Of a stretch of 64,000 bases of DNA, positions 11,661 to 38,052 are shown in pieces (within the stretch, counting starts at the first letter, position 1; the number at the start of each line of letters is the position of its first letter). Made by a program: the position numbers and the translations under genes. The stretch comes from Chlorokybus atmophyticus (taxonomy: Eukaryota > Plantae > Mesostigma and Chlorokybus algae). The stretch covers positions 851,490 to 915,489 of the forward strand of contig RHPI01003369.1 in the NCBI GenBank assembly GCA_009103225.1, in the 5' to 3' direction. Below the pieces are notes generated by a model. That model was not told the origin of the DNA, searched no databases, and was given only the letters and a program-made list of their open reading frames with translations.

Positions 11661-11896
11661 GCGCCGCCGGCGGCAGTAGCCGTGAGCCTTGCAGGTCCCA
11701 AGGCAGAGCTCGGTGTGGCCTGGCCGGGCAAACTATGGACCAAGCTGACAAATTTGCAGCCTGCAAAAGCGTGTGTCTGCGCGCGCGCAGGAATTCTGTG
11801 GCAGGATGGAAACCTGCGTGCGCAGCAGGGCCAGGGGCCGAACATGAAATTGGGCAAACACGGACAAAGAAGCGAAAATGATACGCATAATTTTCA

Positions 11897-11929
11897 TGCC
11901 ATGCACCCGCAAATTGCGGGTGCATGGCA
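11897..11929. repeat. Perfect 16-bp inverted repeat with 1-nt spacer
   Basis: TGCCATGCACCCGCAA-A-TTGCGGGTGCATGGCA. Confidence 0.9.
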
Positions 11930-13815: not shown

Positions 13816-13887
13816 CGATAAGTGCATACAATCGGGAACGGGCATATGCCCGTGCAAATGCCCGTTCCCGATTGAATGCACTTATCG
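13816..13887. repeat. 30-bp inverted repeat (1 mismatch) with 12-nt loop
   Basis: CGATAAGTGCATACAATCGGGAACGGGCAT / ATGCCCGTTCCCGATTGAATGCACTTATCG. Confidence 0.9.
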
Positions 13888-14447
13888 CGGTTATGAGCAT
13901 TCGTAAAGAGCATCACTTATGCACCCGCTTTGAGTGCATATATTACATTATAGGCTTAGCATAAGTGCATATTCTATGCATTTATTGCATGACTCTAATC
14001 ATGAGTTACGTGGATACACTTATACTCGTTATCATATCACACATGAATCGTAATTTATTTATATTCAAAGTGTAACCTACCCTGACAAGTGCACAGACAC
14101 ACTAAAGGTGGGGCATCTTGTAAAATGCAAAAAAAAATAAAAATTGCATATGCTCTTAACGCACATGTGTTGGTTTTGAAGACGTCGAAAATAGCCAAAA
14201 GTATACATTAGGATAAGCAATTATCGAATGTGCACTTATCAAGGTTAGACTGTATTACGCGAGTGGAACATGTACGATGAGTCACACTCATGTGACACGG
14301 GTCACATGTGTACACGAGCCTGCTTGCTCCATCATTGTGTGAAAAGTTGCCACTTTGAGTGTTACTCACATAATTGTCATGTTAAAGGTTCATTATCATA
14401 CTTAATTGCTGGCAACAAACGTATATCGTATGTTGATCATACAGGTG

Positions 14448-14449
<2 letters not shown>

Positions 14450-14488
<39 letters not shown>
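14450..14488. repeat. (CT)n microsatellite
   Basis: Dinucleotide run. Confidence 0.97.
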
Positions 14489-14490
<2 letters not shown>

Positions 14491-15928
14491 GCAAGCACAC
14501 ATGTGCGTGTGTGCATATGTCTGTTATGCATGCGCATGTGCAAGTGCATGCCGTATTGCCACACACACAATTGGAATTGGGCATGGGGCCGTTGTTGTTC
14601 ATCTGCAATTTTCATCAACCAACTACAAAGACAGTTTCAACCTGTTTCAGCTGCATTTGCAACTTGCGAAAGCAACGGTTGCGCCTATACATCATGTTCC
14701 TAGATGCGGGTGACATAAGCCATGACGCACACGCGACAAATGAATTGACACTTCGTGCATTGTGAGCTCACACTGTCACCTCATATGCCCCCACGCACAT
14801 TGTAGGCGTTTGGCACACGCCTAAGTTTGAGCCCCNNNNNNNNNNNNNNNNNNNNNNNNNNNNNNNNNNCCCCCCCTTTCCATTATGGTTGTGGATCTGC
14901 ATGACAAGATCGGCCCCAATTGGCAGATAGCCATTGTTTTGGTAAGCACAAATAAGCACATGACAAACAAAAGAATGGATTGCAATGTTCATCACTATGC
15001 GACACGAGTGCCCTTAATGTTTAAGAATATTGCGCTGTTGAAAAGAAGATGTGTTGCACTTGAGAAGGAGAGAGAGAAGGGGCAGGAGACTACACAACAC
15101 TTTGCTTTTGCTGCGCTTCCCGCTTACATGCATATGCCCATCGAGACCCCCATCGTCGTGGCTGCGAACGCACACAAGCGCAACACCACCACTGCTAGGA
15201 TGGACACCCGCAATCACACACGCGCGTGACTTTACTGCGCGTGACTTTACTGCTGCCCAACTGCATGCATACTTGCGTTTCACATTACCCATATGCGGGA
15301 ACACACTTACACGCAGTTGGGCAGCAGCAACCGTTCCGTTTTTGTAATATATCCCTTGAAGATGTGCCTGTCCCACTGCAAGGGGGTAAGCGGAATGCAT
15401 GCAAACTTGGGTTTGAGCATTGCGTGATGGCATCAACAATGTCTGTGCAAAATGTTGGTGAACCTACTGTTGCTTCCCCTACAGGCATATTGGTACTACT
15501 ATAGTGAAACATGCGCCAAACTCATGGACTTTAGTGCTTGAAGTAACAAATTGTATGCAAGGCAAGATGCTGCCCACATGCATATCAGATAGTTGTGGAG
15601 AAGCAACACGACTGCAGTCAATCGGCACACCAGCAGATAGCACCAGTGACAGCAACACAGTTACAATTTGCCATTGAGGAGGATCCACAGTTGCATAGCG
15701 ATCCCCAGAGCAGGGAATGGACCCTAACAGAGCCTGAATGCAGGCTTATGCACATTAGTAAAAATGAATACTACTACAACTGGATGGCTGGCATGTCGAA
15801 AGGGCGTCGAAGTGTGCTCGCCAACCATGCGCGTGCACTCTCAGCAGACGTGTCTTTTCCACCGCCATCAAGCTAAAACGCTAAGCGTGGGAGAGAGAAA
15901 GAGCATCTCGTGTTATTGCATTGCGCCT

Positions 15929-18900
15929 TTATAACGACGAGGATGAGGTGCTGCTGGCGCGACTCTGGCCTCCAATGAAGTAAGCCTGCGTGTCGCTGTG
16001 GAAGGTGCCATGGCCGTGGCCTCCAAACACAACGAAGAAGGGAGCCACGCCATCCAGGACGACCACGCCGCCGTTGGCGTCATACCTACCAAGGCCGGTC
16101 TCGCTGTAGAGAGGCTGCCACCGCATGGCGGCCACATCAAACCTCCACACGTCGTCCAGGGCTGTGCGCATGCGCCTCCCGCCCGCGCCGCCAACAACGT
16201 ACATGGACCCGCCGAAGGCGCTCGCCGTGTGGGCGAAGCGTGCCTCAGGGATGGTTGTCGGGAAGAGGATGGAGTCGGCGGGCATGGTGGCTGTACCGTT
16301 GATGGTATTGGATGTGAAGTTCAAGGTGCGGGGACCCAACAGGGTCCATGCCAAGGACGTGAAGTTGTACTGCCACAGGTCGGACATGAGCCCACCGGTC
16401 TGGCTGTACCCACCGTACACGTACATGCTGTCCTGGATGACAACGGCGGAGTGCCCGAAGCGCGCGGGCAGGCCCTCAACCTCGGAAGCCAACAACTCCC
16501 ACTCGCTGCTGGCGAAGGAGAACTTCCAGAAGTCGCCCAGCGGCTGTGGTGAGCGCCCGCCAAACACGTACATCTCGCCATCATATGCCACAGCGCTATG
16601 GTCGTGCCTTCCAGCCGGCGTGGTGTTGGTTGCCGCAGCAACAAACGTCCAATCCTGCAATAAAGCAAATCCACTTGTCAGTTCCACGCTCAACAGTTGG
16701 ACTCGCTGGCAAGCGTTGTCTGAGTTTTGTTCCAATGGCTTACCTCAGCAGTGGTGGAGTACTTCCACACGTCGCTGTACTGGAAGGCGCTGCGCTCTCC
16801 ACCGAAGATGTACACGTCAGTGCCGTTGACAACCGCAGTGTGGCCCTTGCGGGCGGGGGGCGTGTGGGTTGTCTCTACAAGAGCCCACTCTGCGACAGAG
16901 GGTTCAAAGAGAACAGCCTCTGTGGCGCTGAGATCAACAGACGCGTTGACACTGGGGAGGTACTTTGTGACGATGATAGCGTCCCAGTAAGCGTTGCCCT
17001 CCACGTTGTCAGCGAACATGCCGCCGCGGATGAAGACATTGTCCCCGAGGGTGCTGGGCTGGTTGCTGAGGGTCTTTGCTGGCGCGCCGTCGACGTACAT
17101 GGTGAGGGACGTGTCGTTGCTGTAGAAAGCGAGGCCGTGCCAGCCGGGTGAGCGTGGGACAGCTGCTGACCTCCACGGATACGAGGTGGCAAACATGTCC
17201 TCCGAGGCGCTGGTGTACAGCCCCAACGCATTGTTCAATGGCAAACGCGACTTGCGGTTCTCCACGTTGCAGGTCGCCTGGCCTGGTGTGTCGGGACTGA
17301 TGTAGTGAGTGCTGTCCGAGCAGCTGCCGTCAAACAGGTACGCCTTGAACCGATACGAAGGCATCGAGTCCAAGGCAGTGGTGATGTCCAGCTGGATGGA
17401 CCCGCCGGGGCCGGTTTGCGTGTCCACGCGAAGTGCACGAGAGCCCTGAAGCGCCACCTCACCGGAGGTAGTGAACGAGTCCATGCTGCTAACACTGATG
17501 AAGCCCGGAGAGCATGACGAGTCGTCCCTGAGGCTCCATCCGTGCTCGAAGATGCTGGCGTTGTACTCGAACCCTTCAAAGAGCTCGAAGATGGCATCGG
17601 TGGAGGTCGACGTGGACGTCTGCGAGCCGTAGTACATGAAGAAGTCGTCCGAGGACATGACCTCCACCCAGAAGAGCGTGTCGGGAGCTCCGCAGCCGGG
17701 CAGAGGGTCAACCCAGTACTGCAGCATGGTGCCGTCGGAGGTGACGAAGCGGATGTCCCCGCAGTCGCCCCGGAGGCTGCCCTCAGCCATGAGTGCAGCC
17801 GTGTCAACCACAACCTCAAGGATATACGCCGCCACATCGATGGCGCCGGACACCGTCACGGGCGCACGGAAAGCAAAGTAGTCCTCCCAGCTCACGCTGC
17901 CCAAGTTGAGCTTCCACGTCTCGCCAAGGTAGGACTTGTCCTTGCCCGCGCCGCCAAACACAATCACCTCAGAACCGACCACAGCAGCGGAGTGCTCGAA
18001 GCGCTCTGCTGGCAAGGTGGTGCTGTCGACCTCCCTCGGGACCCACTCGGACACGGTGAACACAAGGCTGTCGATCAGCTCGCAGTGCATGCGGTCCATG
18101 TCCTCGCAGAGCTTTGCATCAACAGAGAACACGCCCGACTGGGGGAACATCAGGAACATCTCAGCGGTGCTGCTCTCAGCGCCAACCGCGGCAGCTCCAT
18201 AGACGCTGTCGCCGCCGCTGACCTCGAGCACAAGGCGGTCCAGGACCTCGGTGTCGACGGGGACGGGATTGAAGTTGGCATCCAGCACCCGGATAATCAG
18301 AGATGTGGACACGCCGGCCTGGATGTTCCTGTCATGGCTGCCGAGCACAGCACTGGTCTGCGCTGCAGCCGCACCAGGAAGGATGGTCACGTTGTATGAG
18401 AAAGCAGCCTTGGAGCCAACAAGGATGTCCAGTACAGCGGGCCCAGCCTGTGTGGGAATGACAGTCATGTTGTACTTGTCAAGTCCTGTCCAGGTGTGGA
18501 CGCCAGCGACAGTGCTGCCCTGCAGCCAAGTGGGCATGCACGTTTGCTGGTCATCAGCCTGGGTGACAAGGTACTCGGGGTATGTAATGGTGACGGCATA
18601 TGGCTGTGAGCCATCAACCTCCTTGAAACCGCAGCTGTCAATGCCAGTCATGGCAAACACGACTGGCTCGCCAGAGATGGCCTTCTTGATGCTCCAAGTC
18701 TTGCAGCGGCCATCAGCACATCGCGGCTTCGGTCCGGCCTTCGGCACTCCAATGATGGTGGGCGCCATCTCTGAGGTCCAAGTGCTCATGCTGGGTGAGC
18801 TGCAGATGACGCTGATGGCGAGGCTCTTTGTGACACGGTCGCACGGGTTGCCAAAGAAGTCATCATTCGAAGCCATGACAGTGCATGAGCTCTCGCCGAG

Positions 18901-21900
18901 ACAGGCCGCGCTCACAACAGACATGGAATTGTTGCTGCTGCAGTCGTCCACAAAGTATGCACCGCCCACACCCAGGTTGGTGCCATAGTTGGCGAACACA
19001 ACATCAGAGATGAGGGTGCCGACTGGGCAGGTGATGTGCGCCCTGTGTCCCTGGTCCACCTCCGTGAACTCCACGCCGATCATGCCGTGGTTGGCTGACA
19101 TGCTTGAGTCCCGTGCATTGTACCCGGTGGCCTCGTTGAAGCGATAGAATGCCACCAGAGACTTGTCTTGCCTCGCAAGGGTCGCTTGGTCGCACGTGCA
19201 CGCAGCAGCGTAGTCGATCTGAGAGGTGGACAACACCCTGTTGAACAGTTTGACCTCATCAATGTAACCGTCAAAGTCCTTGCCGACACGGAGAGGCTGG
19301 TTGTTGCGCTTCTGCAGCAGGACCTCCTGGTAGTCGTATGTTGCGTTGGCCACGTTCTCGCCGTTCACGAAGAGCTGCAGCTGGGTGCCGTTGTACGTAG
19401 CAGCCAAATGCAGCCAGCTGCTGTACTCGACGTCAATGACGTGGTCCATGACGCGGAAGGTCTCCGAGCCCACGTAGATGCCGACTGTCACGTTGTAGCC
19501 GCCCAAGTGATCAATACGCTGCATGCCGAACCAGTAGCCCTTGTTGCTGTGCTCGGACTGCTTGGACAGGATATACTCGTATGGCGTGATCAAATCATCA
19601 GCCTGCAGCAGCCTCCTCCTGCCGCCCTGGTCGGGGGGTGGAGGTGAGGGGTGTGGGGGAGGTGGAGGCGGGGGTGGGGGAGGTGGTGACGGGCGAGGGG
19701 GAGGGGGAGGTGAAGGTGGCGGCGGGCTTGGGGGAGGTGGCCTGGGTGAGGGCGGCGGGGGACTTGGCGGCGGCGGAGGTGGTGGTGGCGGAGGTGGGGA
19801 AGGAGGGGGAGGGCTTGGCGGGGGTGGGGACGGGGATGGGGGTGGTGGGGATGGAGGCGGCGGCGAGGGCACTGAGGGCGGGTGCTTCCACACCCACGCC
19901 ATCATGGTGAAGGGCGACTCGAGGTCCAGAAGGTCTGAGTCAGGGTACGTTGCATATGTGCTGCCAAAGGTGGTACTGAGAGCACTACCGTCAAGCACCT
20001 CCAGTGGGAACATGCAGTTCTCGCCCGCCGGGCTCATAGATAGCGTGCACGCGCTGCGTGCTGCCTTGGTACCTCCACAGCAGGCCATGCCGCCGTACTG
20101 CAACATGGAATACTTGCTCAGATACACGGCAAAGGACAACAATCGCTTGCACACTTTCCAACAAAATATACCTGGCAGATAGGCTGTCCGCAGAGCGTCA
20201 CATTCATCATGTAGTGGCCCTTGACCTTGGGCAGGTACGTGATTGTGTACGTGCCGTCATAGTTGTCCATTACATCAGCATTGAGGTCGTAGGGTCCGGA
20301 GATTGACACTGCCCATGCGCTGTCCCCGCCCATTGTGCGAAGGTTGCCATATGCATCCACAGTCTGCATATGCACAGTTTCACATAAGCACAAGTGCATA
20401 CCACAACACAATCATTTAATAGCGTACCTGCGCCATGAAGGTTGCAGGAACACCAGCTTGAGCGCTTTCAATGACATTGAGGCCGTAAGTATTGTTGCTT
20501 GCCAAGTACAGGTAACTCTGGGACGGATCGGCAACACTCGGATGCACATAGGTCTTATCAGCGTAAACTGTCTGTCCATCGAGCTCCACCTGATATAGCA
20601 CTTGATTAGCATCAACTTGACAATGCCAAATTGCTGTTAAAGGCCACCCACAAGTCCATACCTGAATGTAATAGTAGCCGCTGATGGTGGCGCTGAACAT
20701 GACTGAGTATGTGCCATCATTGAGGTCCTCGATCTCAAGCTCCACTGAGTTGGAGTGCAAGTGAAGAGGGCCAATCAGGGACGCCGTGTACATGTCGCCA
20801 CCAACCTTCCTCCTGTTGCCACAAGCATCCCGCGACGTGACCGTAAACACGCCACACTCCCCAGCCACAACTTCAGTGAGAGCTGTGCCAGCCACATCGC
20901 TGATTGAAGCATCTGAGAGAGAAAGCAGCTTGTCAGCAAATCTAATGCAGACGCGTGTACTGAACAGAACTTATGACTAACGAACTACTTAGTCTTGTTC
21001 TAAGTTACCTGTGAGGGAATGCATGTCACTGTTTTCAGTCCAGCTGCTGCAGCCAACGGTGGTGTTGACCCAGAACTCAAAGGCAGCAGGCTTGGGGCTC
21101 ACATGCAGGTCACCCGCAGCAGCAAAGATACCAGCATTGCTGGAGTCCTGGACAACGGTGCCCAGACCTTCATCAAGTTTCAGCCACAGAGTCATGTTGC
21201 TCTCGGGGGCCTTGGGCACGCAGTTCATGCCAGCTACAATGCTGTCAATGTCAGTCATGGCAACGTTGTACATCTTGACGGAGTGGATGAGGCCATTGAA
21301 GACGCGCTCGTACTGCTCGGTGTAGTACAAGCCAGTTAAGCCGCCGGCCATGTTCTCACGGCCTAGCATGAAGTCTTGGCTGCTGCCCGTGTAGTAGGCG
21401 ACTGAGTCATAGTTGGTCCAGTCCTTGAGGATGCCATCCACATAGATGGCCCAAGAGGACCCGTCATACACGGCAGTAATGTACTGCCACATGTTGGGGA
21501 CGACAGCAGCCTTCCAGCTCGAGAGCGTTCTGTATGCTTCGCACTTGATGTTGGTGTCGCGGCCGCACGAGCAGCCGGTGTAGAGAGCAACGGACACGCC
21601 ACCCTTCTCAATGCTAAAGCCAAAGCCGGTGTAGCCGTTATCCAGAGTCTGGCCGATGATGGTCTGGTAGCCATCAACGGTATATGGGTAGACCCACGCA
21701 GACACCGTGAAAGGCCCGGCACCCGAGCGAAGGTTGTGTGTGGGCACCGTTTCATTGGCGATGGAGCCTGAGACCGTCGACCAGCGCAGCTGGTATGAGG
21801 CAATGTCCGACTTGTCCGTGTAAGCAAACCAGATGGAGTACCAGCGAGGGCCAGTCAGCTCAATGCTGCCAGACAGCACGCGAGCATCCACCTCACGGGC

Positions 21901-24900
21901 GGTGTCGTTGACCAGCAGCACATCATCGACCTTGAGCGCAACAGCATCATCGGCACGCACGGAGAAGTTGTACGTATCAGTGGTGGCTGCGAACACCCAG
22001 CCGGTGATCTCCACCGACCAGTCGTCGAGGACGCTGATGCCAGCTGGCGCCGCGAGTCCCCACTCGGCATTGATGTTGGAGATGAGCTCGGTGACCTGCT
22101 CGTTGCCGGCGGTGTATACGGCAACGAGTCCGCTGCTTCCTTGAGGGGTTAGGCCGCTTGGTGCAATGGACACATACTGGCCGGCACCAAACTCGAGAGC
22201 GTAGTCCTCAGTGTAGTACAGCTTGGCGATCTCAGCGCCGCTAAGGATGCGGTTGTAGATGCGCACCTCATCAACAGCGCCGTGCAGCGTACGGCCGATG
22301 ACAGATGTGGTTAAGATCTCCAGGGCAGGGGCCGCGTACGCAGAGCTGTTGCTGATCTGGTGACCATTGAGGTACACGCGCGTCTCTGCCGCATCAACGG
22401 TGACGGCAATGAACTGCCAGGCCCCGTTAATGGTGGCGTTGCCGGCCTGGCAAGCGCTCTCCTCGTAGCCGCTGCATGTGTCATAGGACGGGAAGACCAT
22501 GTCGTCGAAGTACACCCACATGCTGACTGTGGCTGCGCCGTCACATGTGGTGATGTACACGCCTGCCGCTACGTCATCGAGGAACATGTAAGCACTGTTG
22601 CTGCGTCCATCTTTGTCTGCACATTCCAACATTGCAGGTGAGAAATTCACAACATTTTGATGCCATGACGAAAGGCCCACATTGGTGCCGACAAAGTGTG
22701 CTGCTACATACCTGCTGTAAGGACTGCTTCAACAGCCATGCCATGGTTGCCGTTGCCGCTAGCATCCTTGGCATCGCCATTGAAGGGATAGTAAGCGCAA
22801 AGGCCGTGCACTAGGTCCTCTAGGATGACTTCACGCTCGTACGTGAGGGAGTTGACGGGGGCGCCGCAGATGGCCGAGTTGATGACAGTCAGGTCATCGG
22901 GTGTTGTGCTGGCGGGCAACGTGACCGTCATCTCCTCATTGGAGTTCCATGTGGACGCCAGCACCTCACCATTGAGCATAACCGACGCGGTATCAGCAAA
23001 GTTGATGCCCGTGATGGTGACCTCGGTGCCATTCTTGACTGCGCCAGAGGTCTGCATGTACACGTCTGAGGCGGCGGACGTGTCGTGAATGCTGATTGGC
23101 ACCGCGGGGAACCACGGCACGCCGGCCCACGTGCCGGCAGTGTGTGCGGACTTGTCAAGTCCCGTGCCCTTGAAGCTCAGGGTGGTGTTGTCCCAGTTGG
23201 AAGACTCCGATTGAGCAAGCACGCCACCGCCCGACACAATCCCGGACTCGATGTCGATGCTGTTGAACTGCAGGTAGCCAACGGGCTCGGCGCTGGCCGC
23301 GTCGCCTCCACACATGAACGACATCACCTCCTCCGCCGTGAGAGCATAATCGTAAACACGGACCTGCACATCCCAACAACAACCTTGTGTCAGGTACGTG
23401 CAACATAGAAGTTGTCGCAGAAGTAGGTATATATAAGATGGAAGATTGAGTCCTTACCTCATCGATAAGGCCTGAGAAGTACTCAGATGGGTAGTGGTCG
23501 TCATCAAGGGTCATGCCAACATACAGAGTGCCGTTGACAGACGTGTCCGGCCGGGAGACTGTTGCAAACGTTGAGGCGGCCATTCCATTGATGTACAGAG
23601 TGCCTTCATTGGTTTCATTGACTGTGTGACACAAGTTGGTGTCAGCTAGATCACGACCAGCATGCACGTGAATATACCACCCAACATGGCATGCACATTA
23701 CCTGTTACGAAGACATGATGCCACTGGCCAGTGGCAACATATCTGTCGCTTCCATCAGGGTACTTCATGCCAACATCATGAATATGGTCGTCGTAGTAGT
23801 AGAACACGCCAAATGGAGAATTGGAGTCACCCTTCCATTGCAGCACGGCACGATTGCGGTTGTCGCCCAGGCTGCCGAATGCAATGACAGATTGCAGTTC
23901 GCTGTTCTCATAGGGATACGCCCACGCGCCGAAAGAGTACGCTGGTGAGGTCAGCGCGGGAAGCACGCTCTTGAAGTCCACAAAGTCCATTGTCGTCCAC
24001 CTGTCCGTGCACTCAATTGCGACAGAAAGCCACTTCTTGTCGTGCGGGCACGCGTCGCCAAACCAAGACACCACTGCAGGAATGCTGCAGGTGCTCTGGC
24101 CAATGCACAGCTCCACCACGACCTCGTGCACAGTGCTGCTGTTGCTGTCGCAGAGGTTGTTGGTGGTGAAAGTGGTAAAGTCGCACAGTATGTCGGTGGT
24201 TGAGCTGTCGCAGTTGGTGTGCACGTCGTTGTTGCACTTGTTTGCGGGCCTTCCAAAGCTGGCAAATTGCAGGTTCTCCATGCGCAGGCCTGTGGGGCAG
24301 GTCAGCGTGAGAGTGTCGTTCTCATCAGCATAGCCACCAATCAACTCTGCAGGAGTCGTGGTGCGATCGCCCTGGAACTCCAACACCTTCTCTGAGTATG
24401 AGAGCGACGCGAACGCATCCGTGGACTTTGGGTTCACCACTTGCAGGACCATCTGGCCAGGTGCATCTGCAGGAGCAGACTCGCACTCGGCGCTCAGACC
24501 ATCATAGTGCACAAGGCTAAACATAAACAAGTTGTCGGTGCTCTCCGCAACAGGCAGAGTTGCAGCTGTGTGCTTCACGGCCGTGACAATTGTGGTTGTG
24601 TTGCTGCTTGGCAGGGTGTTGACGAATGAATGCGCACACTTCAACCACTGACTCTTTGCCAAGTTGAAGCCTTTAACCAGCATGGTGTCGCCACCATCCA
24701 GCTGCATGGTCTCAGCTTCGCTCAGGGTAAACCTTGATGAAGCCTCCCATGGAGCGGTCACGTACATGTAGCCCGGCTCGTTGTTGATGACAAACTGAGC
24801 GGTACCCTGCTCGCGCTCGCCCTTGTTACCTGTGGGGAAGCTGTCCAGCACGCCAAGCGCATCCTCAGTGGGCGTGAACGTGTACAGCTGCTGGCTGTCA

Positions 24901-27900
24901 CCGGTGCTTGGGTTCATGCGATAGTACACTATCGGCGCAGTGTCATACTCGCTCTCAGGCAAGCGGGAGAACATGGTCTGCGTGTCGCGAGCCATATCCG
25001 GAGAGGCGAACACGCGCACTTCATCAATGAAGCCGTTGAAAAACTTGCCAGTGTCAGCATTGCAGTGGCCCATCTCGGTGATGCCGCCGGTGCCGCCACC
25101 AGAGTTTGCGAGCAAGCGGCGGCGGCCGCCCTGATCAGGTGGGGGAGGGGAAGGTGGGGGTGGAGGAGGAGGTNNNNNNNNNNNNNNNNNNNNNNNNNNN
25201 NNNNNNNNNNNNNNNNNNNNNNNNNNNNNNNNNNNNNNNNNNNNNNNNNNNNNNNNNNNNNNNNNNNNNNNNNNNNNNNNNNNNNNNNNNNNNNNNNNNN
25301 NNNNNNNNNNNNNNNNNNNNNNNNNNNNNNNNNNNNNNNNNNNNNNNNNNNNNNNNNNNNNNNNNNNNNNNNNNNNNNNNNNNNNNNNNNNNNNNNNNNN
25401 NNNNNNNNNNNNNNNNNNNNNNNNNNNNNNNNNNNNNNNNNNNNNNNNNNNNNNNNNNNNNNNNNNNNNNNNNNNNNNNNNNNNNNNNNNNNNNNNNNNN
25501 NNNNNNNNNNNNNNNNNNNNNNNNNNNNNNNNNNNNNNNNNNNNNNNNNNNNNNNNNNNNNNNNNNNNNNNNNNNNNNNNNNNNNNNNNNNNNNNNNNNN
25601 NNNNNNNNNNNNNNNNNNNNNNNNNNNNNNNNNNNNNNNNNNNNNNNNNNNNNNNNNNNNNNNNNNNNNNNNNNNNNNNNNNNNNNNNNNNNNNNNNNNN
25701 NNNNNNNNNNNNNNNNNNNNNNNNNNNNNNNNNNNNNNNNNNNNNNNNNNNNNNNNNNNNNNNNNNNNNNNNNNNNNNNNNNNNNNNNNNNNNNGGGTGG
25801 GGGTGGCGGGTGGGGTGTGGGAGGAGGTGGTGGCGGTGGTGGAGAGGGCGGAGGAGGTGATGGTGGAGGGGGAGGAGGGGGAGGTGATGGTGACGGTGGT
25901 GCCAGACCGCACCAGACACCACCAACGTAGAAGTTGCCACCTGCAGAAGGCACACCATCCATGGCGAATGGAATAGAGAAGTTGAGCTTCACGCCATCCA
26001 CCATGAGTGTTGCCTCGTATGCAAAGTCGGACATGTCGGAGGGAAGGTCAATCTCCGTGTTGTTGATGACCACCTCAGCGTAGTGCCACTCGTCGAGCAC
26101 TGCCACCATGCTAACCGTCTCGTTGTATTGGTAGTTGAGTGTCTCAGAGCCGTACTGAACCTCCGCGTCTGAGTACAGATACACGCGCTGGTTCTTGTAC
26201 ATTATGCACACTTGCAGCGGGACGTTTGAGCCTTGGTTGCCAGCGCAGGGGGCCGCAAAGCACAGCACCGGCTGATCCTGGCAGACGCTGTCGCCAATAG
26301 GATAGAACCATGCTCCCATCGTGATGCCGGAGAAGGGAGTGTTGGAGGCAGCATTGTTCGCCCAAGGCGAGTCAACGTAGTCATCATCACCGTCAAAGTA
26401 CAACGCCATCTCCATGACTGTCAGCGACTCGGGAGTTGTGTATGATGGCATGACAGCTCCGGTTGTGTTCTGACTCTCACATGGGTAGGGGATTTGTGTA
26501 CCCTCCGCTGCGGCATTGTTGGTGATGCTCAGGTCAAATACTCCAGGCGTGTCTTGGCCAGGTACATCGCACTCGACGCGATCGAAAGCCATAAACTTGG
26601 CTGGGATCAGCTCATCATTGAGAGAGCACTGCAGCCACTGAGAATTCGCATAACCGAAGCCGAGCATGGTAACTTGATCGTGGCCATCGATAGGGATGGT
26701 CTGCAGCAACAGGTTCTCATAGTACTCGCTGCACCTGTAGTCATTGGTCGTTGGTATCCCTTAAGATAAATACAGCAATAGAAAAACATGGCACGCACAT
26801 GATCACTTGAAAGCACATCTTACCCAATAGGTGTTGGTGCAGGTGTTGGTCCAGTCCAGGCGCCAGAGTCAATAGCGTTGGGTACATAACTCCACAGGCT
26901 GGTGGGAGCACACCATGAACTGTCGCGTGCCTTAGCAGCTTGCAGAACGCAAGGCGGCAAGAATGGCACGGTGGTCATGGTCCAGAGCGGCTCATCATTA
27001 GCAGCTCCATCAAATGCATGAACAGCCAAGGCAGGGTTGTTGTAGCGCGAGCTGTCCGATACGACGCTTCCCGTGAAGTCATTAAACGCGTAGCGCGCGA
27101 TCTGGTCCTTGGCTGTGTCTGGCTGCACGGTGCTACAGCTGGGGCTAAGGGCGCCACGCGTGACGTTGCCGGTCCACATGATGGCCTGCACCTCGCACGC
27201 CGTCAATGCGCGTTTCCACACGGTCACCTCCTCCACCATGCCCTTGAAGCAGTGGCCGATGCCATCGGAGTAAGCCAGCAGCCTGCGGCGGCCTCCCTGA
27301 TCCGGCGGAGGCGGGCTGGGTGGCGAGGGCGGTGGGGGTGATGGCGGCGGATGGGGTGGTGGCGGGGAGGGTGGTGGTGGGGGAGGTGGTGGCGGCGGGG
27401 GGCTCGGGGGAGGTGGAGAGGGAGGCGGCGGGCTAGGGGTTGGTGGCGGGGGTGAAGGAGGTGGTGGCGGGGGTGGAGAGGGAGGAGGTGGGGAGGGAGG
27501 AGGCGGGGATGGCGGTGCGCGCTGGAACTGGTAGGTGCACCCGATGTGGAGCTCGCAGAGCGGGATAGATTCGGGGAACAGCTGTGTGGTAATGTTGGTA
27601 TCGAGGAGACCATCAACATACAGGCTGGCTGTTCCATTGCTGTGGACAGTGAGCATGACATAGTGCCATTCATCGGCGGCAGCCACAATGTTTCCGGCCT
27701 GGAACTGCACCGTGCCTTCGTGCGTGCGATCGACGTACGCAAAGGTGTTGTCGGTCTGATAGTACACCGCAATGCCTTCTGCGCTGATGACATTCTCAAA
27801 CTCCAGAAGACGACGGCCACCCTGTTGAAGGTTGATGTCAGCATGCAATCTGGATCACCATGTGCAATCCAACAACGTGACATTAAGCTTACTGCTTCCG

Positions 27901-30900
27901 GAGGAGGTGGGGAAGGTGGAGGTGGTGGGTGAGGTGAGGGCGGTGGTGGAGGAGGTGGAGGGTGCGGGGTTGGGGGAGGAGGGCTAGGAGGAGGCGGAGG
28001 GGGTGGGGAAGGCGGCGGTGGTGAGGGCGGCGGTGGTGAGGGTGGAGGAGGAGATGGAGGTGGTGGCGGCTCGGGTGTAAGCTTGCTTGTCCACATGAAA
28101 ACGATGCTGTCCTTTGCCATGCCGCTCTGCATCACATCAGTACCTTGTCAGCCTTGTGTCTGATTCAATTTGGTGGAGTGCGTGTCAAGAATTGCAACTA
28201 CTGGCAAAGACGTACCTGCGGATATACCCAGCCACCCACAGAGTATCCTGTAAATGTGCTGTTCAGATCATCGGCGACAGTGTCAGAGTTGACAAACTCA
28301 TCAACACCATTGAACCGCATGGCCTCCTCCAGATAGTACAGCGGAACCTGAGTATTGTATCCGTTGTATTAGCACCACAAACAACAAGTGCCTACACAAC
28401 TGTGCACAACACTTTTGACATACCTGGTTGTCACTGAAATCAACATCATTGTTGCTGACATCAACAGGGGGCGAGCACGGCGTGGATTCAGGAGTGATGG
28501 CTTCGATGTCTGTGTTGGAGATCCACTTGGCGGGAATGACTTCCGCTCCGACCCTGACTTTCAGCCACTGGCTGCGAGCAAAGTTGGCTCCCGTCACGGT
28601 CATCTGCTGCCCACCATGAACGTGTGCAACGGGGGGGCCATCTTCAACAGACACGCGCAGTGGGCAAGTCTTCGTGAGAGGAGTTGGGGCCCACTCGTAC
28701 GTGTACACGCCAGTCCCATTCCAGCGAGCATGGTTGTCTGAGCCCGAGGAGTCCACGATGGTGAAGTTCATCGCTTCAACAATGAACTCCGCAGTGCCAG
28801 GGTTGGCAGGTGCAGTGCCGTCTGTCTGCGGGTACTGGTAGAACCCATCAAGGGCGCCCTCGTTGAACTTGTAGTACCCAACGAGGCCAACCTCTACTGA
28901 AGCATCCAAATGATACGTCATCTGTGCGGAGATCTCGATTGACGTCAGCGCCCTGCTGTAGATGCGGACCTCATCAATCAGGCCGGTTGTTGTCTGGTTA
29001 TACAACGAGCCAATGAAGAAGTGGCCTTCCGCGCCGTTGACGCTTTCGAGCACTGAGCCAACAACGCCGACCTTGCCGTCGACCATGTCGGCATTGGTTG
29101 ACTCCTTCGACCATGGGTAGTGCTCTCGGCTACCGCTGGCATACTGAACATACTGCACGCCATCCAAGTAGATAGTGACCAGGCCGGCGGGGTCGATGGT
29201 GAGCATGGCAAAGTGCCACTCGCCATCGCAGTACATAGGCTCCGTGCTAAGAGTTGTCTGATTCACATCGCTGCCGTTGACGTACACCAGCTGATAGTAG
29301 CTGCCGAGGGTCTTGTTGTTGACACCATCATTGAAGGCGAGAGGGTACACTGGCTCCCACAGGAGCTGATGCACGATGATGAACTCAGCGCCGCTCTCGG
29401 GGGTGTAACCGGCCGTGAGGATTGGCTGCGCAAAGGCGCCTGTCTCTTCAAACAAGAACCACGCGCCCATGGACATGCCGCAGTCGGCCGTGAGAGAGGG
29501 GAGGACCTCATCCGCCAACACGTACGCTCCGGACTCGAAGCTGGCGGCCATGTCGGTGACAACAATAGTGTAGCAGCGCTCATCGCAATATGTGCCATCT
29601 GTTGGGTCGCACGGGCCCTCAAGTGTAGAACCCCACTCGGCCGGGCTGCGGCTGTTTTGCGCGGTGAAGCACAGCTGGTATTCGCACTCTTGCGACGAGG
29701 CGGGTGTCCACATGAAGGTCTTTGTTGAGGGGTCGCTGACATGGTCGATGAACTCGGCTCCGTCGGGAAGCTCTCCCTGGCTGAGGTTGATGCGGATGGG
29801 CCCGTAGCCGGAGCCCTGCTTGGCGGCCAGCATGAAGCTCAACGTGTTGTTTGCGGTGACGTAGAACTTGGTGTTGTTGAAGGGCGTCACTGCGGTAGGT
29901 AGAGTGCCGAACGTGTTGTACATTGCGGGCGTCGGCCATGCGCGCTGATCCATCCAGTACAGCGGCTTGTCCTCGTACAACGTGATGTGGACACAACGGA
30001 ACTGGGAGACGATGTAGTTGTCCGTTGTCAAGAAGCAGACCGCCACATCCCTCGGGCGCACATCAACGTCCACACCATTCAAGGTCTCAAAGATTGGCGC
30101 CCACGTAAATGTCCGACGAACCTGTAAGGGTTTTCTTTCTTGTCAGTCACCATCTCGCGTAATATCAATATGACCTCATTGCTGAGCCAATAACATACCA
30201 ACAGCACGCGAGCAGTGCCAGGTGAGTGATGGTGTGTGTACCTGTCGCTCATCGTCGCGAACATGGTCGCCAAGAACCATTCCTGTGTAGAGGCCCACAT
30301 CAATAATTTGCAGCTCCACGCACTCATCATCGTCGCGCGCAACCAGGTTGAAGGTGACGGTGCTGCCCACACGCTTGCGGAACAAGGCTCGCGGAATAGG
30401 GCAGGTGGAGGTGGGTGGCATGCACTCCACGTCCTTTGGCGTCAAACCGTCATCAACAGTCACCGACTCCACCCAGTATGGCGGACTGTGAAAATATAAC
30501 GCGTCAGTGACTATAATCTGTGTCAACCAAAGACAGGACACACAGTGCCCACTTTGCATGCAACTTACATGTTTTTCTTGCAGGAAGGAACGGCTGGAAT
30601 AATTGACAGCGGCAAGACGGGGTTGGGCAGAGTCTGCACGAGGTTGCTGCAGTCCATGTCTTTGTTCAAAAGGGCATTATTAGCGTCAACCACAACACCG
30701 GGGCAGCTCGTGCCAGTCGGGCAACTGTCGGAGCCGCTCAGCGCGTGTCCAGGCACCACCGGTCGGCAACGCGTGTAGTCTTCAACAACGGTGGTATTCT
30801 CCTCACCACCTCCGCAAATGGTGCACTTGCCGGTGCCCGGCCCGTTGTAGACGAACGGGGCCGTGTGAGGGTCTCCGTAGAATCCATCGGCGGCGCGGAA

Positions 30901-33658
30901 CGTTTGGATGCCGCTGAGGGTGTTCTGGCAATCGATGGAGCAGTAGTGCATCGACGGGTACAGGTAGATGAGGAAGTCCAGCGGCGTGGAGATGTTGCCC
31001 TTCATCGGGCCGTTCATGTAAGCAGCAGACGCATCATTTGCTGGGCCCGACACCTGAAACGCATCACTGTTACAACACATCCACCAAGCAGATGATAAAG
31101 AACAAAGCACATGAACCAACAACAGCACTCACCATGACCACCAAGTTGTAGAAGCCGGACTTCATGGGCTGGCGGGGAGGGTTGGGAGCGGGGCTGCCAT
31201 CCGGGTAGGGTGCCGAGTCAATCTCAAATGGGCCGATACCAGTCTCCCAGGTCACGATACCAGTCAATTCATCAATGACAAGGTAATCTGGGTTGGTAGC
31301 GTAGTTCACATTGTCGGACCAAGCTGGCAACGACGGGTTGAACTGCGCGCGCTGCGCCTCGTACACCCACGGCCACCACGTCATGGTTGTAGGGTTGTAA
31401 ACCGGGTTGCCCATCAATGCACCATACCTAATTTGGTAATCAGTAAGGTGAGTGACTGTCAAACAACTATCATCTGTTGTAATGTGTACTGAACAAGAGC
31501 ATAACACTTACTCGACCCTGGTACCCAGCCGATAGTACATGGGCTGGTTAGCAAGTTCACCCTCGCCTTGAGAGATCAAGTCTGGATCGAACGCAGCGAT
31601 TTGGAAGTTCGCCATGCCCTCAGCGCGGCCAATATAGGGTTGAGGCAACACGGGGATCTGCGAGCACCAGGTTTATGCCCATGAGCAAGCTCTCTCTTTT
31701 GTTCTCGAGCAACACCATCATTGCAATGCAATGATGGTGTTGATGTGGACAAACCTGTGTAGGACGTGGTGAGTTGTTGGTTCCCTGTACGTTAACGGTG
31801 ACTTCCAGACGGAAGCGACCGTTCTGGTTGTTGTTGAGGTTGACAAGACGGTTGCCTCCAGTGAAGTAGGCTAGCCATGGCTCAGCGGCTGACTTCTTTG
31901 CAGTGGCGTAGTTGTGAGTAAACACAGCCTTGCCACGAATGAAGTTGCCGGCTTTGCTTGAGGTCGAGTCCACCTGGTTGATAGCCATTGAAACCTCTTG
32001 CGTGGCTCCATCGCCATAGAAGAAACCGAAGACCTGCCAAGTCTGGTTTAGAATTCACCAACTACGTGTGCATACATCATGACGAGTTGTGCAAATGCAA
32101 GCAAACTGAAGTAGCATTTGCTGAGCCTTGTCATAACATCCAACCTGTGACCAAGGCGTGCAGTAATCGGGTTGATCGTTCGGTCCAGCTTCGCAAGGAA
32201 GGCCGCTTGGGTACAGCGCAGCCAGCGTCGGCTCAGAGAACTGAACCAGCGTGCCGACGGAAATGCCGTTCGGGCAGTCGGGACTGTCACCAGGATCATT
32301 GTACGACGTGCACTGGCAGGGGCCGTGAGGGCAAGCCTGCGTTGTGCCGCTCGCTGGCAGCAGCGGGAACGCCGAACCCAGACCCCTTCCCACCGGAAAT
32401 CGCAAGTAGTACGGGTGGTTGGGGTCGTCATATGTCGTTCCAGGCGCAAACTGCTCACAAGAAACAAGGGCGTGTCACACAGTGGTTTACAACAAGCATG
32501 AGATGTGCTCTGGCATCAACAGTTGAAACCACATTGCCACCTGCAGGGGCTCAGCACAGCCCTCCCCGTTCTGTTGGGGTTTTGTGTTCTTTGTTTGTTT
32601 GTTTGTTTGGTTTTTTTTTTNNNNNNNNNNNNNNNNNNNNNNNNNNNNNNNNNNNNNNNNNNNNNNNNNNNNNNNNNNNNNNNNNNNNNNNNNNNNNNNN
32701 NNNNNNNNNNNNNNNNNNNNNNNNNNNNNNNNNNNNNNNNNNNNNNNNNNNNNNNNNNNNNNNNNNNNNNNNNNNNNNNNNNNNNNNNNNNGGGGGGGGG
32801 GGGGGGGGGGGGGGGGAGCAACCAGTGCTCATGTTGAGATCGCTAAGCTCATAAGCAAGAAGTACATATTCACCTAGAGCTAAGTGTGATGACCCACCGT
32901 GAGGAACGTGTTTGGGTCAACGATGATGTGAGCGGGTGGCACAGTGGTGATGGGAGTGTCGGGCACACCCGAGTGCCAGTCCACGCCATCCGACGACCAC
33001 AGCTCGTTGAAGAACTTGCCCCATGTGTAGTCCCGACGGAAAGCCGCCTGAAATGTAAACTGCACCTGGTACTGCGTTGACGCATCTGAACCCGGCTTGG
33101 GCTCCCAGTAGATTGTACCGTAGCGGAAATGCGTGGCTGCGCAATTACGTCACCGTTAGTCACTGAGGCTTCCATATTACGCAAAAGCATGAGACCTTAT
33201 CGACACGCATAGCTCCCTGACAAGTGTGTTCGTGCTTTGGTACTCTTTTTACAACTGCAACTGAAGGTGGTGGTGTAGCGCAATTGAGCAAGAAGCTACT
33301 GAAGGTGATGTTGAGGCCACTCAATTGACTTACGTTGAATTCAAAAAACAAGCAGTTTAACACGAATGGAGCACACATCTTGGTAATGTCCTCACATGTG
33401 TATGCAGCCGATCACAAAACTCTACAGGCACACCGCTATGAGTGCGTAGTCAACAGTGAGCCGACTACATGTGGACAGTACTCTAAGTGGATGTGCTAAC
33501 GTCAAGCACAACGTTTGCTGAGTTACAAGTGCGATCGACCAACGCCCGCCCTTACCAGAGGCAACGGAGAGTGTACAGAGCAAAAGCAACAGCGCCTTGC
33601 TCGCCAGCTGCCCGCCCCCCTGGCGGGGGGGCCGTCTTCTCCGGCTTCCTTCTTCCAT
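15929..33658 (-). CDS. Giant secreted multidomain glycoprotein of about 5,000 aa: signal peptide, HFRYG-type N-terminal region, ~7 LamG/ConA-like domains, IPT/TIG x3, Ser-Pro(n) rods x4, SUEL lectin x2, PA14, filamin-like x2 or more, DUF2341, C-terminal Kelch propeller
   Basis: ATG at 33658 gives MEEGSRRRRPPRQGGGQLASKALLLLLCTLSVAS, spliced to ATHFRYGTIYWEP. Long - strand ORFs (28301-30082, 26820-27848, 25135-26709, 23646-25958, 20989-22680, 16690-20154, 15929-16735) are linked by GT-AG introns. LamG motifs (xAWVYP...WH...LYVDG...F.G.IDEVR) recur. Stop at 15929; no C-terminal TM segment seen. The N gap 25174-25794 lies in a Pro-rich coding tract. Confidence 0.88.
17540..17890 (-). other. DUF2341-like domain within the giant protein
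   Basis: WEDYFAFRAPVTVSG...EVVVDTAALMAEGSLRGDCGDIRFVTSDGTMLQYWVD...LFWVEV...FMYYGS...IFELFEGFE matches the DUF2341 pattern (D..DIRF....L.YW.E...WVK...Y.YYGN...F..FDDFE). Confidence 0.75.
18780..19040 (-). other. SUEL/galactose-rhamnose-binding lectin domain (C-terminal copy)
   Basis: HITCPVGTLISDVVFANYG...CSSNNSMSVVSAACLGESSCTV...FFGNPCDRVTKSLAISVIC. Confidence 0.85.
20200..20890 (-). other. Two filamin/ABP280-type Ig repeats
   Basis: FTVTSRDACGNRRKVGGD...DLNDGTYSVMF and TVDAYGNLRTMGGD...DNYDGTYTITY. Confidence 0.8.
21735..22130 (-). other. PA14 carbohydrate-binding domain
   Basis: INAEWGLAAP...DDWSVEITGW...YNFSVRADDAVALKVDD...LSGSIEL...YSIWFAY...LRWS...VP..NL. Confidence 0.8.
24005..24320 (-). 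other. SUEL lectin domain (N-terminal copy)
   Basis: LTLTCPTGLRMENLQFASFGRP...CDSNSSTVHEVVVELCIGQSTCSIP...FGDACPHDKKWLSVAIEC. Confidence 0.85.
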
Positions 33659-35721
33659 TGGAGGAAGGGGGAGACTACGGCAACTACAGGGGCGATGACA
33701 TGCCCTGTACAAGAGGGGATCGCTGCTGCCTGCCCTCAATGCACCTTGAAGCACAATCAACGCCCTAATCCGTCCGGCGCTCGTCTCAAGCAGATCAGCA
33801 TGCGCCGATCCCAGCTCCAACACGTCCTTCTGGCCTCTGAAGGCCTGCGTGGGGGCAACACTCCCGCTCCTCCTCCTCCGCCGCCGCCGCCGCCGCCGCC
33901 TTGCCTGGGCCCGCGAAGCCCGCTGTGATAACTGTCTGCTAGGCGCTGGCGGGGAAGTGTTAACCTTATTTTTCCCCCACTCAATGTGTGTCACATTGCC
34001 GCGTTGCCCACCCCTCCAACTAACTGTCGCGCATGAAGACAAATTGCCGATAACGGTTTTGCCGAGGGGATTGAAGGCTTGGACAAAAACCGCAAAAACT
34101 TGAAGGTGTTCTAGGGTTATTCCGCATACCAAGCCCATTTTCGCGAACTTGCTTCACATACAGTGCAAACTGCTCGACCCCAATTGTCTTGAGTTCTGAG
34201 GAATCAGTTTATTCATATAAATTTCCACCAAAGTTAAGTTTCTAGTTGCAGGTTTAACGCGTTCAGACGCCTTTCTACCGGTAGTTTATCGGCGGCAGGT
34301 CCCATTAAAGCGTCACGTGACTTGCCAGCTTCCAGGCATTCTTACACCGATTTACCTGCTGGCTGTAACCATACGGACAAGCACAACAGACTGCTGCAGA
34401 CCATACCACCTGTGGGTAATCGTATCTGGCAATGTCACTCAATCAAGCCTAGACAAGCCTAGATTGTCACTATGCTGTTGAGTCAACAGCAGGATGATCA
34501 GCAATGGATAGTGTACCACGAGTACATGATTTAAAGTGTAAAATGTAGTTATAGACACACGCATATATAGATGATTGTGTATATAGGTGTAATTCACTGT
34601 CATTCTCACGCATTATCATCAAAGATTATCTTATTATCAATTGTTGCGATGTAGTCACTACATTGTAGGAAGCTGCATATGTTTGATATATACAAACAAT
34701 ACAGCAATGCGCCGCATGACGTGCATGCAGCAATCTAGATTTCAATTATTGTCTGCATATTTTCCACTTAGCACACATGCGTACAACGCGCACGTCCTCG
34801 CACAGGGCTGCTCCCATGTGCACATGCAGGCTCACATATATAGACGCATGTGCATGCGCCCACCCACACCCACACACATACACGTACATGCTCCCACACT
34901 CATTCACGTGCCACTTTAAGTGGCGCTGTTAATATCTTAGCCGTCGCAAACACCTTTCAGAAACATCTCAACATCTGAGACAGGTACCCATGCACACAAA
35001 GCTACAAATGTTAACATTTTCATCGCAAATACCCTTACAAACCATCTCACTGTTTAAGGTGGATACCCATGCCCCCCCCCCCCCCCCCCCCAAACANAGA
35101 AGAAGAATTGAATGTGCATGTTGTAGTAACACACGTTCACTACACATTCAATACAGCGTCTCCTCATTGTCAGGGTTAACGTTGCGCTCTGGAATTGATA
35201 GCTTGCAACGAGAGCATATAAAGACATTGGGGGTATAATTTGCTCGCACTGGGCAACCTGCTGTTGAGCCCCATCACCACGCCATTGCCGTTGTTGCTAT
35301 TCATATGCATGTTTGCTGCCATTAACGACTAACCGTTGATGTGCATCACGTTGAGCAAACCTTACCACTACCACTGCTTGCTTGCATGCGGTAATGTGAT
35401 GTCCGATATCCTTTGGTCACAGCAGTGTTCTTGCATATGCTATATCATTACGAATTTCAACATGACAGGGTGCTTTAATACCACGATACAATCTGCCTTC
35501 GATATAAGCAAATTCTGACTATTGCAAGTTTACCTCGTTTTAAGCACATCTTGCGGTCAGATTAAGGCAATCTGCAAGGCTATTTACTCCGACGCATAGC
35601 ACTCAGGTTTGCACACCATGTTGTACAGTATGTGGATGACCTCTGCGTTGTGGCATTGCCAGAGTTCACTGCGTGCATGTACCTGCACCCACAAGCCTTG
35701 GGTGGCAACATATACCCACGT

Positions 35722-37382: not shown

Positions 37383-38052
37383 CAGTACTGTTGCGCTGCC
37401 TTAGTAGTCCTGCGACCCACAAAGTGCCCAGTATACGATGGATCGTGTACTTCATCTATGCATTTTATGCGCAACCCAGCATGGTCGGGTTTCACCAAGC
37501 TGGCGCTCATATAATACAAGTTGTCTCTGTTGTCAAGCTTTTGTACATGCTTTTGTATAGAGAACCATGGGTCTAATGCATACCCCTGTAAAACAGCTTG
37601 CACAAACTCATCACTAGGAGGCAATGTACCCTGCGTTGCACGCAACTGCGCACGCATAACTGCCAATAATAACGGACAGCGACTTAAAGGATCTGCCACG
37701 TTGGTTCTGCCCGGCCGGTATACCCATTCAAAGGTAAACCGCGACAGGAACTCATTCCAGCAAGCTTGCCTACGCGACAAGTTAAGCTGTGTTGTAAAGT
37801 ACACCAACGGGTTGTGATCAGTCACCACTGTGAACTGAACTCCCTTAGGTCCATACTCACACTTTCCCACTTGTTATTAGGAACAGGCAAAGGTCGCAGC
37901 AACCCACCGGGTTTCTGACGTAACGGCTTGTCACGCTGACAATTGTCACACGTGCCAACATAATGCTTCACGTCAACAGGCAACGATGGCCACCAGTACA
38001 ACTGGTGCGCTGCCTTAGTATATACTGGGCACTTTGCGGGTCGCAGGCCAAG

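Follow-up and report, generated by a model that had tools for sequence, protein, structure and literature searches.

The stretch of DNA analysed here (the window) comprises 64,000 nucleotides (nt) of the alga Chlorokybus atmophyticus (assembly GCA_009103225.1, contig RHPI01003369.1, positions 851,490 to 915,489 of the forward strand). On its minus strand we rebuilt one gene of 21 exons, which runs from the ATG at 33658 to the stop codon at 15929-15931 and encodes a giant, predicted secreted protein with several types of carbohydrate-binding module; both the strand and the extent are those of an earlier reading of the letters of the window (the original prediction), which had also proposed a single giant secreted protein of this kind. 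The gene was rebuilt using a codon-score model trained on long exons, chaining of exons by dynamic programming, and curation by eye at three places. Long open segments cover the minus strand from ~34150 to 15930. All 20 introns are bounded by GT and AG, mostly in the context CAG/GTA...CAG/G (a slash marks the junction), and 18 of them measure 64-120 nt; their GC content is 0.36-0.51, compared with 0.51-0.67 for the exons, in which in-frame stop codons are absent. The translation amounts to 4,892 residues outside the second of two assembly gaps (2,033 before and 2,859 after it). Single exons were used as queries in database, family and folding analyses, and the joined translation served only for length, hydropathy, composition and sequon counts.

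At two places the choice of acceptor was aided by relatives. The acceptor of exon 11 is backed by the Chara and Mesostigma sequences at the site of the first proline-rich rod. Exon 14 may begin after 23621 (CACACAG/) or 23645 (ATCTAG/), both in frame and 24 nt or 8 codons apart, and the relatives favour 23621; the pair (23622-23645) may represent alternative 3' splicing. The chaining also placed very small 5' exons upstream of 33658, which were dropped, given that the ATG at 33658 phases into exon 2 and fits the N-termini of relatives. Bacterial contamination was ruled out by the 20 spliceosomal introns and by the algal origin of the closest relatives.

The two assembly gaps within the span raise the question whether two or more adjacent genes, or a pseudogene, were joined by the model alone. 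The first gap (32621-32791) sits within intron 2 (donor ACG/GTGGGT at 32897, acceptor 32451), bordered by a tract of over 20 C and, at its other end, by A9 followed by (CAAA)n (32792-32815; 32570-32620), and this low-complexity DNA probably caused it. In tblastn the Mesostigma viride protein Mv19218-RA.1 aligns with residues 27-80 before and 120-303 after this gap, and the 39 unaligned residues are explained by the remainder of exon 2 together with the first part of exon 3. The second gap (25174-25794) lies inside the third of four proline-rich rods (rod 3), which itself splits a LamG domain (LamG3). Upstream, the N-terminal half of LamG3 ends in ...FYVGGVWCGLAPPSPS(P)n; downstream, (P)nSPPPPDQGGRRRLL is followed by the C-terminal half, ...FFNGFIDEVRVFA. 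Residues 1769-2052 and 2113-2599 of the Mesostigma protein flank the gap, and the 60 residues between them are its own rod. The reading frame differs on either side of 25174-25794, which would favour an artefact, but since the length of the gap is only estimated, the offset is uninformative. Continuity across the second gap is thus well supported by the sequence on both sides, with a length of more than 51 residues for rod 3.

When three full-length relatives, from Mesostigma, Cymbomonas and Chara, were compared with the window by tblastn, each gave a collinear chain from ~33140 to ~15965 across both gaps, without missing or extra segments, and the high-scoring segment pairs ended where the exons end. 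In BLASTP chains of the Mesostigma protein against other representatives, several proteins were likewise collinear end to end. Since three full-length relatives are collinear over the whole locus, it is one gene and not several. Transcripts of several separate genes, which the original prediction had named as grounds for giving it up, are contradicted by these relatives and by the single transcript product of 5,078 residues from Pyramimonas obovata. With a single LamG domain divided by the second gap, every exon open and every intron canonical, an artefactual fusion is very improbable.

Table 1. Features of the rebuilt gene, listed from its start to its stop codon (positions in the window).
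Feature	Position	Strand	Basis or remark
Exon 1: start codon and signal peptide, ends in phase 1	33556..33658	-	donor CTG/GTAAGG joins exon 2 in frame
Exons 2-4: putative SIBA-E_N-type domain (exons 2 and 4), interrupted in exon 3 by a Cys-containing insert of 102 residues	31755..33136	-	Pfam PF24907
Exons 5-8: strongly conserved Cys-rich region	30242..31657	-	no Pfam match; tblastn collinear
Exon 9: weak He_PIG-type Ig, LamG1, TIG1	28424..30121	-	Pfam
Exons 10-12: LamG2 in three pieces, split by rods 1 and 2	26824..28347	-	Pfam, sequence view
Rod 1 (exon 11)	27893-28126	-	phase-0/phase-0 exon; GGRRLL 27804-27821
Rod 2	27294-27524	-	GGRRRLL 27276-27296
Exon 13: TIG-like 2, LamG3 split by rod 3, TIG-like 3, SUEL1 (23973-24335), start of LamG4	23702..26734	-	Pfam, internal BLASTP; rod 3 GGRRRLL 25110-25130
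Exons 14-15: remainder of LamG4, TIG4, start of LamG5	22712..23621	-	Pfam, tblastn
Exon 16: LamG5, PA14 (21760-22227), LamG6 (21175-21792)	21009..22616	-	Pfam
Exons 17-19: two filamin/ABP280 repeats	20172..20912	-	Pfam E 9.9e-10, 2.3e-9
Exon 20, first part: LamG7 split by rod 4 (19627-19884)	19198..20097	-	Laminin_G_3 E 8.2e-17; GGRRRLL 19606-19626
Exon 20, middle: SUEL2 (18802-19035), two filamin-like Ig repeats (18028-18780)	18028..19035	-	Pfam, BLASTP
Exon 20, end, and exon 21: Kelch blade 1 (17878-18060), Kelch blade 2 (16744-16911), intron 20, remaining blades, stop	15929..18060	-	Pfam
Insert after Kelch blade 1: DUF2341 (17557-17766), ConA-like (16948-17610)		-	Pfam

The domain content was determined by scanning Pfam families exon by exon. 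Laminin_G_3 exceeded its cut-off at six places (among them LamG1, E 3.2e-13; two in exon 16, E 3.4e-15 and 2.4e-17; LamG7, E 8.2e-17), and two more ConA-like segments gave weak matches, namely LamG3 (Laminin_G_2, E 0.065) and the segment that follows DUF2341 (22.2 bits; cut-off 27.6). The LamG count of the original prediction, about seven, thus becomes about eight. Its TIG-like type held, while its count of three did not: TIG was significant twice (32.5 and 27.7 bits; TIG1 in exon 9, E 8.9e-8), and two extra domains, missed by Pfam, resembled the first TIG in an internal BLASTP comparison (E 1e-10 and 4e-6). The other modules it had named, two SUEL, PA14, filamin repeats and DUF2341, were each recovered: SUEL (PF02140) at 47.9 and 52.6 bits with a cut-off of 31.4, PA14 once at 45.7 bits (E 7.4e-12), filamin at 39.6 and 38.4 bits and DUF2341 once at 45.7 bits. 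SUEL2 (E 6.2e-14) resembles the solved L-rhamnose-binding lectin 5h4s (E 2.7e-18); the SUEL motifs, FGR/YGT, DAC/NPC and KWL/KSL, are near-variants of what we take to be the canonical YGR, DPC and KYL. At least one further filamin-like repeat was found by BLASTP (E 3e-5 to the first filamin), with weak matches to the Dictyostelium gelation factor.

At the N-terminal end the scan pointed to a putative domain that the original prediction had missed, together with a weak He_PIG-type immunoglobulin (Ig) module in exon 9 (E 0.0026, below cut-off). The match to the SIBA-E_N-type family PF24907 is split between exon 2 (profile positions 1-29, 12.7 bits) and exon 4 (positions 45-118, 28.0 bits; cut-off 28.1), and the same family is annotated, in precomputed form, on full-length relatives. 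Exons 5-8 matched no Pfam family; they carry the motifs GFYNLVVM, PLDFLIYLYP and CTICGGG, and many of their alignment columns are invariant across six relatives. Exon 9 found no match in PDB with phmmer, and the ESM Atlas feature search returned only sub-threshold DUF2341 clusters.

The protein begins with a signal peptide, MEEGSRRRRPPRQGGGQLASKALLLLLCTLSVAS/A, encoded by exon 1 and followed by THFRYGTIYW; exons 1 and 2 are joined in phase 1 as ...SVAS-A-THFRYGTIYWEP. Relatives with an N-terminus, about ten in number, likewise have a hydrophobic leader directly before (S/T)HFRYGT(I/L/M)SW. As originally predicted, neither a transmembrane segment nor a glycosylphosphatidylinositol (GPI)-type tail accompanies it: in 19-residue Kyte-Doolittle windows (mean >1.6) the leader is the sole membrane-like segment of the joined translation, the three other windows above 1.6 being strand-like (two with acidic residues, one formed by Kelch strands of the last blade), and the Ser-rich C-terminus, ...GGQSRASSTSSSSL, has no hydrophobic stretch. 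Without the gap, the translation contains 97 Cys and 50 N-glycosylation sequons and has an unglycosylated mass of ~529 kDa.

The four extensin-like rods of the original prediction were found as Ser-Pro(n) tracts of 63, 77, >51 and 86 residues, and all four close with (D)QGGRR(R)LL. The four terminal motifs are written in differing synonymous codons, which argues that the peptide is under selection and that the rods are not spliced out. Each rod lies inside a LamG domain: two interrupt LamG2, and LamG3 and LamG7 hold one each. The loop before an F-x-G-x-(I/V)-(D/E)-E-V strand is the site of rods 2 and 3, rod 4 follows an A-W-V-W strand, and rod 1 lies one strand later. In relatives that lack rods, both halves of each LamG domain are adjacent. 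An AlphaFold model of LamG7 (predicted local distance difference test, pLDDT, 79.6) places strands on both sides of the rod, with DQGGRRRL as the least confident stretch, and matches ConA-like domains in PDB over 270-300 alignment columns, rod included. Matches of this model to clostridial toxin and PAPP-A structures were taken to reflect the shared ConA-like jelly-roll fold and nothing more. Rod 1 differs in exon structure: it forms a phase-0/phase-0 exon of its own, with a 71-nt intron directly before the GGRRLL codons, and skipping it would keep the frame; no intron boundaries set off the other three.

Rods of this kind, ending in GGRR(R)LL, were shared with Mesostigma only among the relatives compared. 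In Mv19218 the same three LamG loops hold rods of the form (SPPPP)n-GGRRLLQ; its paralogue Mv15517 carries one at the rod 4 site. Since the Mesostigma rods occupy the same loops, the inserts predate the split between Mesostigma and Chlorokybus. The Chara protein has non-proline inserts in the rod 1 and rod 2 loops (one of ~170 residues) that end in GRSLL or ERSLL, and the Cymbomonas protein has MRHLLQ at the rod 3 loop; in Cymbomonas and in metagenome relatives the loops are short. To judge from these sequences, R-x-L-L may have arisen before the proline tracts. Conservation of the motif at a flexible position fits a cleavage site, but the motif might also be no more than the beginning of a strand that re-enters the fold.

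A second case of nested construction lies at the C-terminus. Kelch repeats flank the DUF2341 and ConA-like segment on both ends and run through the last exon, on whose reading frame Beta-prop_ATRN-LZTR1 scored 123 bits in Pfam; DUF2341 and the ConA-like domain are thus inserted after blade 1 of a Kelch propeller, and the same order is seen in the consensus of 20 relatives. Of the six-bladed Kelch propeller originally predicted, the repeats are borne out by Pfam, while six blades are seen only in the model of a 700-residue relative (P0019; pLDDT 82, predicted template modelling (TM) score 0.81), which matches six-bladed Kelch domains, those of LZTR1 and KLHDC2 among them, at a TM score of ~0.7. 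Going by this model, the ring would be closed by blade 1.

Relatives were collected by an exhaustive HMMER search with a 1,188-residue open frame around exon 20 as query, yielding 8,543 representatives at E<=0.001 and 105 at E<=1e-30. A word-index search started from the C-terminal part of the Mesostigma protein returned next to nothing, owing to the limits of that method. The closest is a fragment from Chlorokybus atmophyticus itself, Chrsp66S07199 (P0001; 66% identity by HMMER, 72% in the tree alignment). Full-length relatives are Mv19218-RA.1 of Mesostigma viride (P0002; 4,959 residues), CBR_g151 of Chara braunii (GBG58751.1, P0003; 5,242 residues), CYMTET_4743 of Cymbomonas tetramitiformis (KAK3287761.1, P0005; 4,923 residues) and A0A7S0WPQ0 of Pyramimonas obovata (P0213; 5,078 residues). 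The last is transcript-derived and matches in its leader, HFRYGT start and Pfam set; since it derives from a single transcript, the whole architecture stands on one mRNA in a relative. For the Chloropicon primus protein QDZ17706.1 (4,516 residues) the comparison covered only the motif near the N-terminus and the last ~950 residues. More members come from Pyramimonas, Chloropicon, Pycnococcus, Prasinococcus, Tetraselmis and Prasinocladus and from long metagenome proteins. A listed Prorocentrum sequence (P0190) falls in the 90% cluster of a protein of Pyramimonas sp. CCMP1952 (P0014), and its presence in a dinoflagellate transcriptome is probably due to prey or culture contamination.

In the Mesostigma, Chara and Cymbomonas proteins the modules follow the same order as here, from the signal peptide and HFRYGT(I/L)SW domain to the Kelch propeller with its DUF2341 and ConA-like insert, and are collinear throughout; for these and for the Pyramimonas obovata and Chloropicon primus proteins, identity over the C-terminal 950 residues is 31-36% by BLASTP (35-45% by HMMER). 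The combination, which the original prediction had called unfamiliar, is therefore not unique, the same families occurring also in Pyramimonas, Chloropicon and metagenome proteins. We found no literature description of such proteins in searches on the domain combination, on Sib-like proteins in green algae and on scale proteomes, and every source label of the relatives reads 'hypothetical', 'uncharacterized' or gives a single-domain name. A characterised orthologue of the same architecture, which would have spoken against novelty, was thus not among them; the relatives of the same order are uncharacterised.

A maximum-likelihood tree of the region after rod 4 (26 rows, several of odd composition; 951 columns, LG+G4, support by the Shimodaira-Hasegawa approximate likelihood ratio test only, midpoint root) groups the protein of the window with Chrsp66S07199 (support 100, short branches) and then with Mesostigma Mv19218 (92); Chara and chlorophyte proteins belong to the same subfamily. 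A second subfamily (100) unites Chlorokybus Chrsp115S00763 and Mesostigma Mv15517 (99) with Pyramimonas, Cymbomonas and Chloropicon proteins, and a third holds Pyramimonas and metagenome proteins. Two to three paralogues occur per genome, in unicellular and multicellular taxa alike. Because the first two subfamilies each hold both lineages, the subfamily split is probably older than the divergence of Chlorophyta and Streptophyta, a date that is a reading of the midpoint-rooted tree rather than a test. We read the protein of the window as a recently duplicated Chlorokybus member of an ancient family of very large mosaic proteins, predicted to be extracellular, that is found in prasinophyte-grade green algae and early-branching streptophytes. 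In Chrsp66S07199 the annotated model starts immediately downstream of the rod 4 site. This gene model is probably truncated at a proline-rod gap and the family is likely under-annotated in the public gene set; gene models of the family are easily broken at proline rods.

Several known systems share parts of this architecture. The SibA-E proteins of Dictyostelium, integrin-beta-like adhesion receptors that are reportedly large extracellular proteins with Ig-like repeats and a role in adhesion, may have the same N-terminal domain type, the match here being split and borderline; unlike them, the protein of the window has no VWA domain (by Pfam, in the exons scanned), transmembrane helix or talin-binding tail. 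The animal proteins attractin and MEGF8 likewise combine an extracellular Kelch propeller with lectin-type modules, whereas here CUB, EGF, PSI and C-type lectin modules and a membrane anchor are absent and the propeller hosts DUF2341 and the ConA-like domain between blades 1 and 2. With extensins and the volvocine hydroxyproline-rich glycoproteins the protein shares predicted secretion and Ser-Pro(3-5) rods of 60-90 residues joined to globular modules, and volvocine sexual agglutinins and pherophorins combine hydroxyproline rods with globular modules. In contrast to extensins, no rod here contains Tyr, so that YXY or VYK cross-link motifs are absent, and the rods lie inside LamG domains, not between domains; a pherophorin domain was not found in the protein. 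Giant surface proteins of prokaryotes (e.g. the partial Nanoarchaeota protein P0217) share the pair of DUF2341 and ConA-like domain and strings of LamG_3, but match in single modules only (1-5% query coverage) and lack introns, the HFRYGT domain and a Kelch propeller hosting the pair.

Our favoured reading, which we consider likely as a whole, is that the locus represents a single intact nuclear gene, whose 21 exons encode a secreted protein of ~4,900-5,100 residues; the most likely role of this protein, as suggested by its modules, is that of a multivalent extracellular glycan-binding scaffold. The signal peptide would route the protein into the secretory pathway, where it would be N-glycosylated (50 sequons) and its four rods hydroxylated and O-glycosylated like extensin-type modules. 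Unanchored, it would be kept in the cell covering by many weak contacts with polysaccharides or glycoproteins, made by about eight ConA-like/LamG domains, two SUEL domains of the rhamnose/galactose type, one PA14 domain and the Kelch propeller with its insert. Spacing would be provided by the TIG, filamin and He_PIG-type Ig modules, giving a long multivalent cross-linker or adhesive scaffold. The rods would project from LamG surface loops, each ending in an exposed GGRR(R)LL that may be a dibasic processing site, and cleavage there would free one end of the rod, the LamG fold staying assembled.

Several points weigh against this reading. 'Lectin' is here a label for a module type: sugar binding is not a constant property of LamG_3/ConA-like, PA14 and Kelch folds, and the SUEL motifs are near-consensus. 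R-x-L-L may have a structural part, at the point where the chain re-enters the LamG fold, instead of being a cleavage signal. The exon model for Chlorokybus rests on sequence signals and homology, and the frame across 25174-25794 is unreadable, the length of that gap being an estimate. The taxon range is drawn from ~40 identified proteins and says nothing on absence from land plants, core chlorophytes or Mamiellophyceae.

Two other roles were weighed. Scales are formed at one or more life stages by many taxa that have the family, namely Mesostigma, Chlorokybus (zoospores), Chara (sperm), Cymbomonas, Pyramimonas, Tetraselmis and Pseudoscourfieldia. To our knowledge, Chara and Chlorokybus do not feed on prey. 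Since the family occurs in non-scaly algae and in Chara and Chlorokybus, neither scale cross-linking nor prey capture, both raised by the original prediction, is specifically favoured. The protein might nevertheless be a component or linker of organic body or flagellar scales, or of coverings rich in 2-keto sugar acids, its lectin-type modules and Kelch propeller binding Golgi-made polymers of the type of 3-deoxy-D-manno-oct-2-ulosonic acid (Kdo) and 3-deoxy-D-lyxo-heptulosaric acid (Dha). The scale habit of so many members and the description of prasinophyte scales as Golgi-made and Kdo-rich, with extensin-type glycoproteins suggested as their scaffolds (PMC13213038), agree with this, as does a match of the Kelch part to NanM, the propeller of a sialic-acid epimerase, although this match, at 31.9 bits, stays below the cut-off of 45 and is weaker than generic Kelch matches. 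The family is, however, also present in Prasinococcus, in Chloropicon primus and in coccoid Pycnococcus, the latter two being listed, like coccoid Pseudoscourfieldia, as not scale-bearing, and the Pseudoscourfieldia paper does not mention these modules (PMC13213038). We regard such a role as having a small chance of being correct.

We give a slightly smaller chance still to an adhesion molecule acting between cells or between cell and substrate, for instance in recognition by gametes or zoospores or in holding sarcinoid packets together, in the manner of Chlamydomonas sexual agglutinins or Dictyostelium Sib. It would account for a putative N-terminal domain of the SibA-E type, for the combination of hydroxyproline-type rods with globular modules, and for the N-terminal 700 residues being the best conserved, as expected of a specific binding head. 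Yet a protein without membrane anchor, VWA domain or cytoplasmic tail would not signal or anchor in the way of Sib, and two to three paralogues per genome are found in unicellular and multicellular taxa.

A bolder proposal, unlikely when taken as a joint claim, is that the one chain is cut at four exposed GGRR(R)/LL sites into up to five chains, and that the family also scaffolds the acidic Kdo/Dha-rich coverings of early green algae. If so, the chains would stay joined through the complemented halves of LamG beta-sandwiches, and glycosylated polyproline rods with free ends would project from them. This would be a previously undescribed way to build a branched matrix protein, dating at least to the ancestor of Mesostigma and Chlorokybus.

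Under the favoured reading of a multivalent scaffold, the family bears on a little-known subject, the proteins behind the organisation of scales, thecae, mucilage and first walls in early-branching green algae. Because ~5,000 residues are collinear from prasinophytes to Chara and two subfamilies each span both lineages, the protein is a strong candidate for a component central to the matrix of the ancestral green cell. Its nested design, with rods in LamG loops and DUF2341 and a ConA-like domain in a propeller, is an unusual case of domains within domains that can be studied across about a dozen genomes. Concrete reagents are available in its conserved head at the N-terminus, its Kelch propeller and its SUEL, PA14 and LamG modules.

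Within the surroundings viewed, no neighbour hints at an operon-like functional link. Downstream, at 8700-15900, where the GC content is 0.42-0.46, only short open reading frames without family matches were seen; at 10877-12114 two of them overlap (334 residues on the plus and 258 on the minus strand), with only a sub-threshold low-complexity match to 'New_glue'. At 36180-41526, ~2.5 kb upstream of the gene start, the minus strand carries parts of a Ty3/gypsy chromovirus, namely a gag segment that includes a zinc knuckle, RNase H, an integrase zinc finger, a Tf2-type SH3 and a chromodomain. In the putative 5' region, at 33850-33925, a GC-rich triplet repeat gives an open frame with a run of 13 Arg on the minus strand and 11 Pro on the plus strand.

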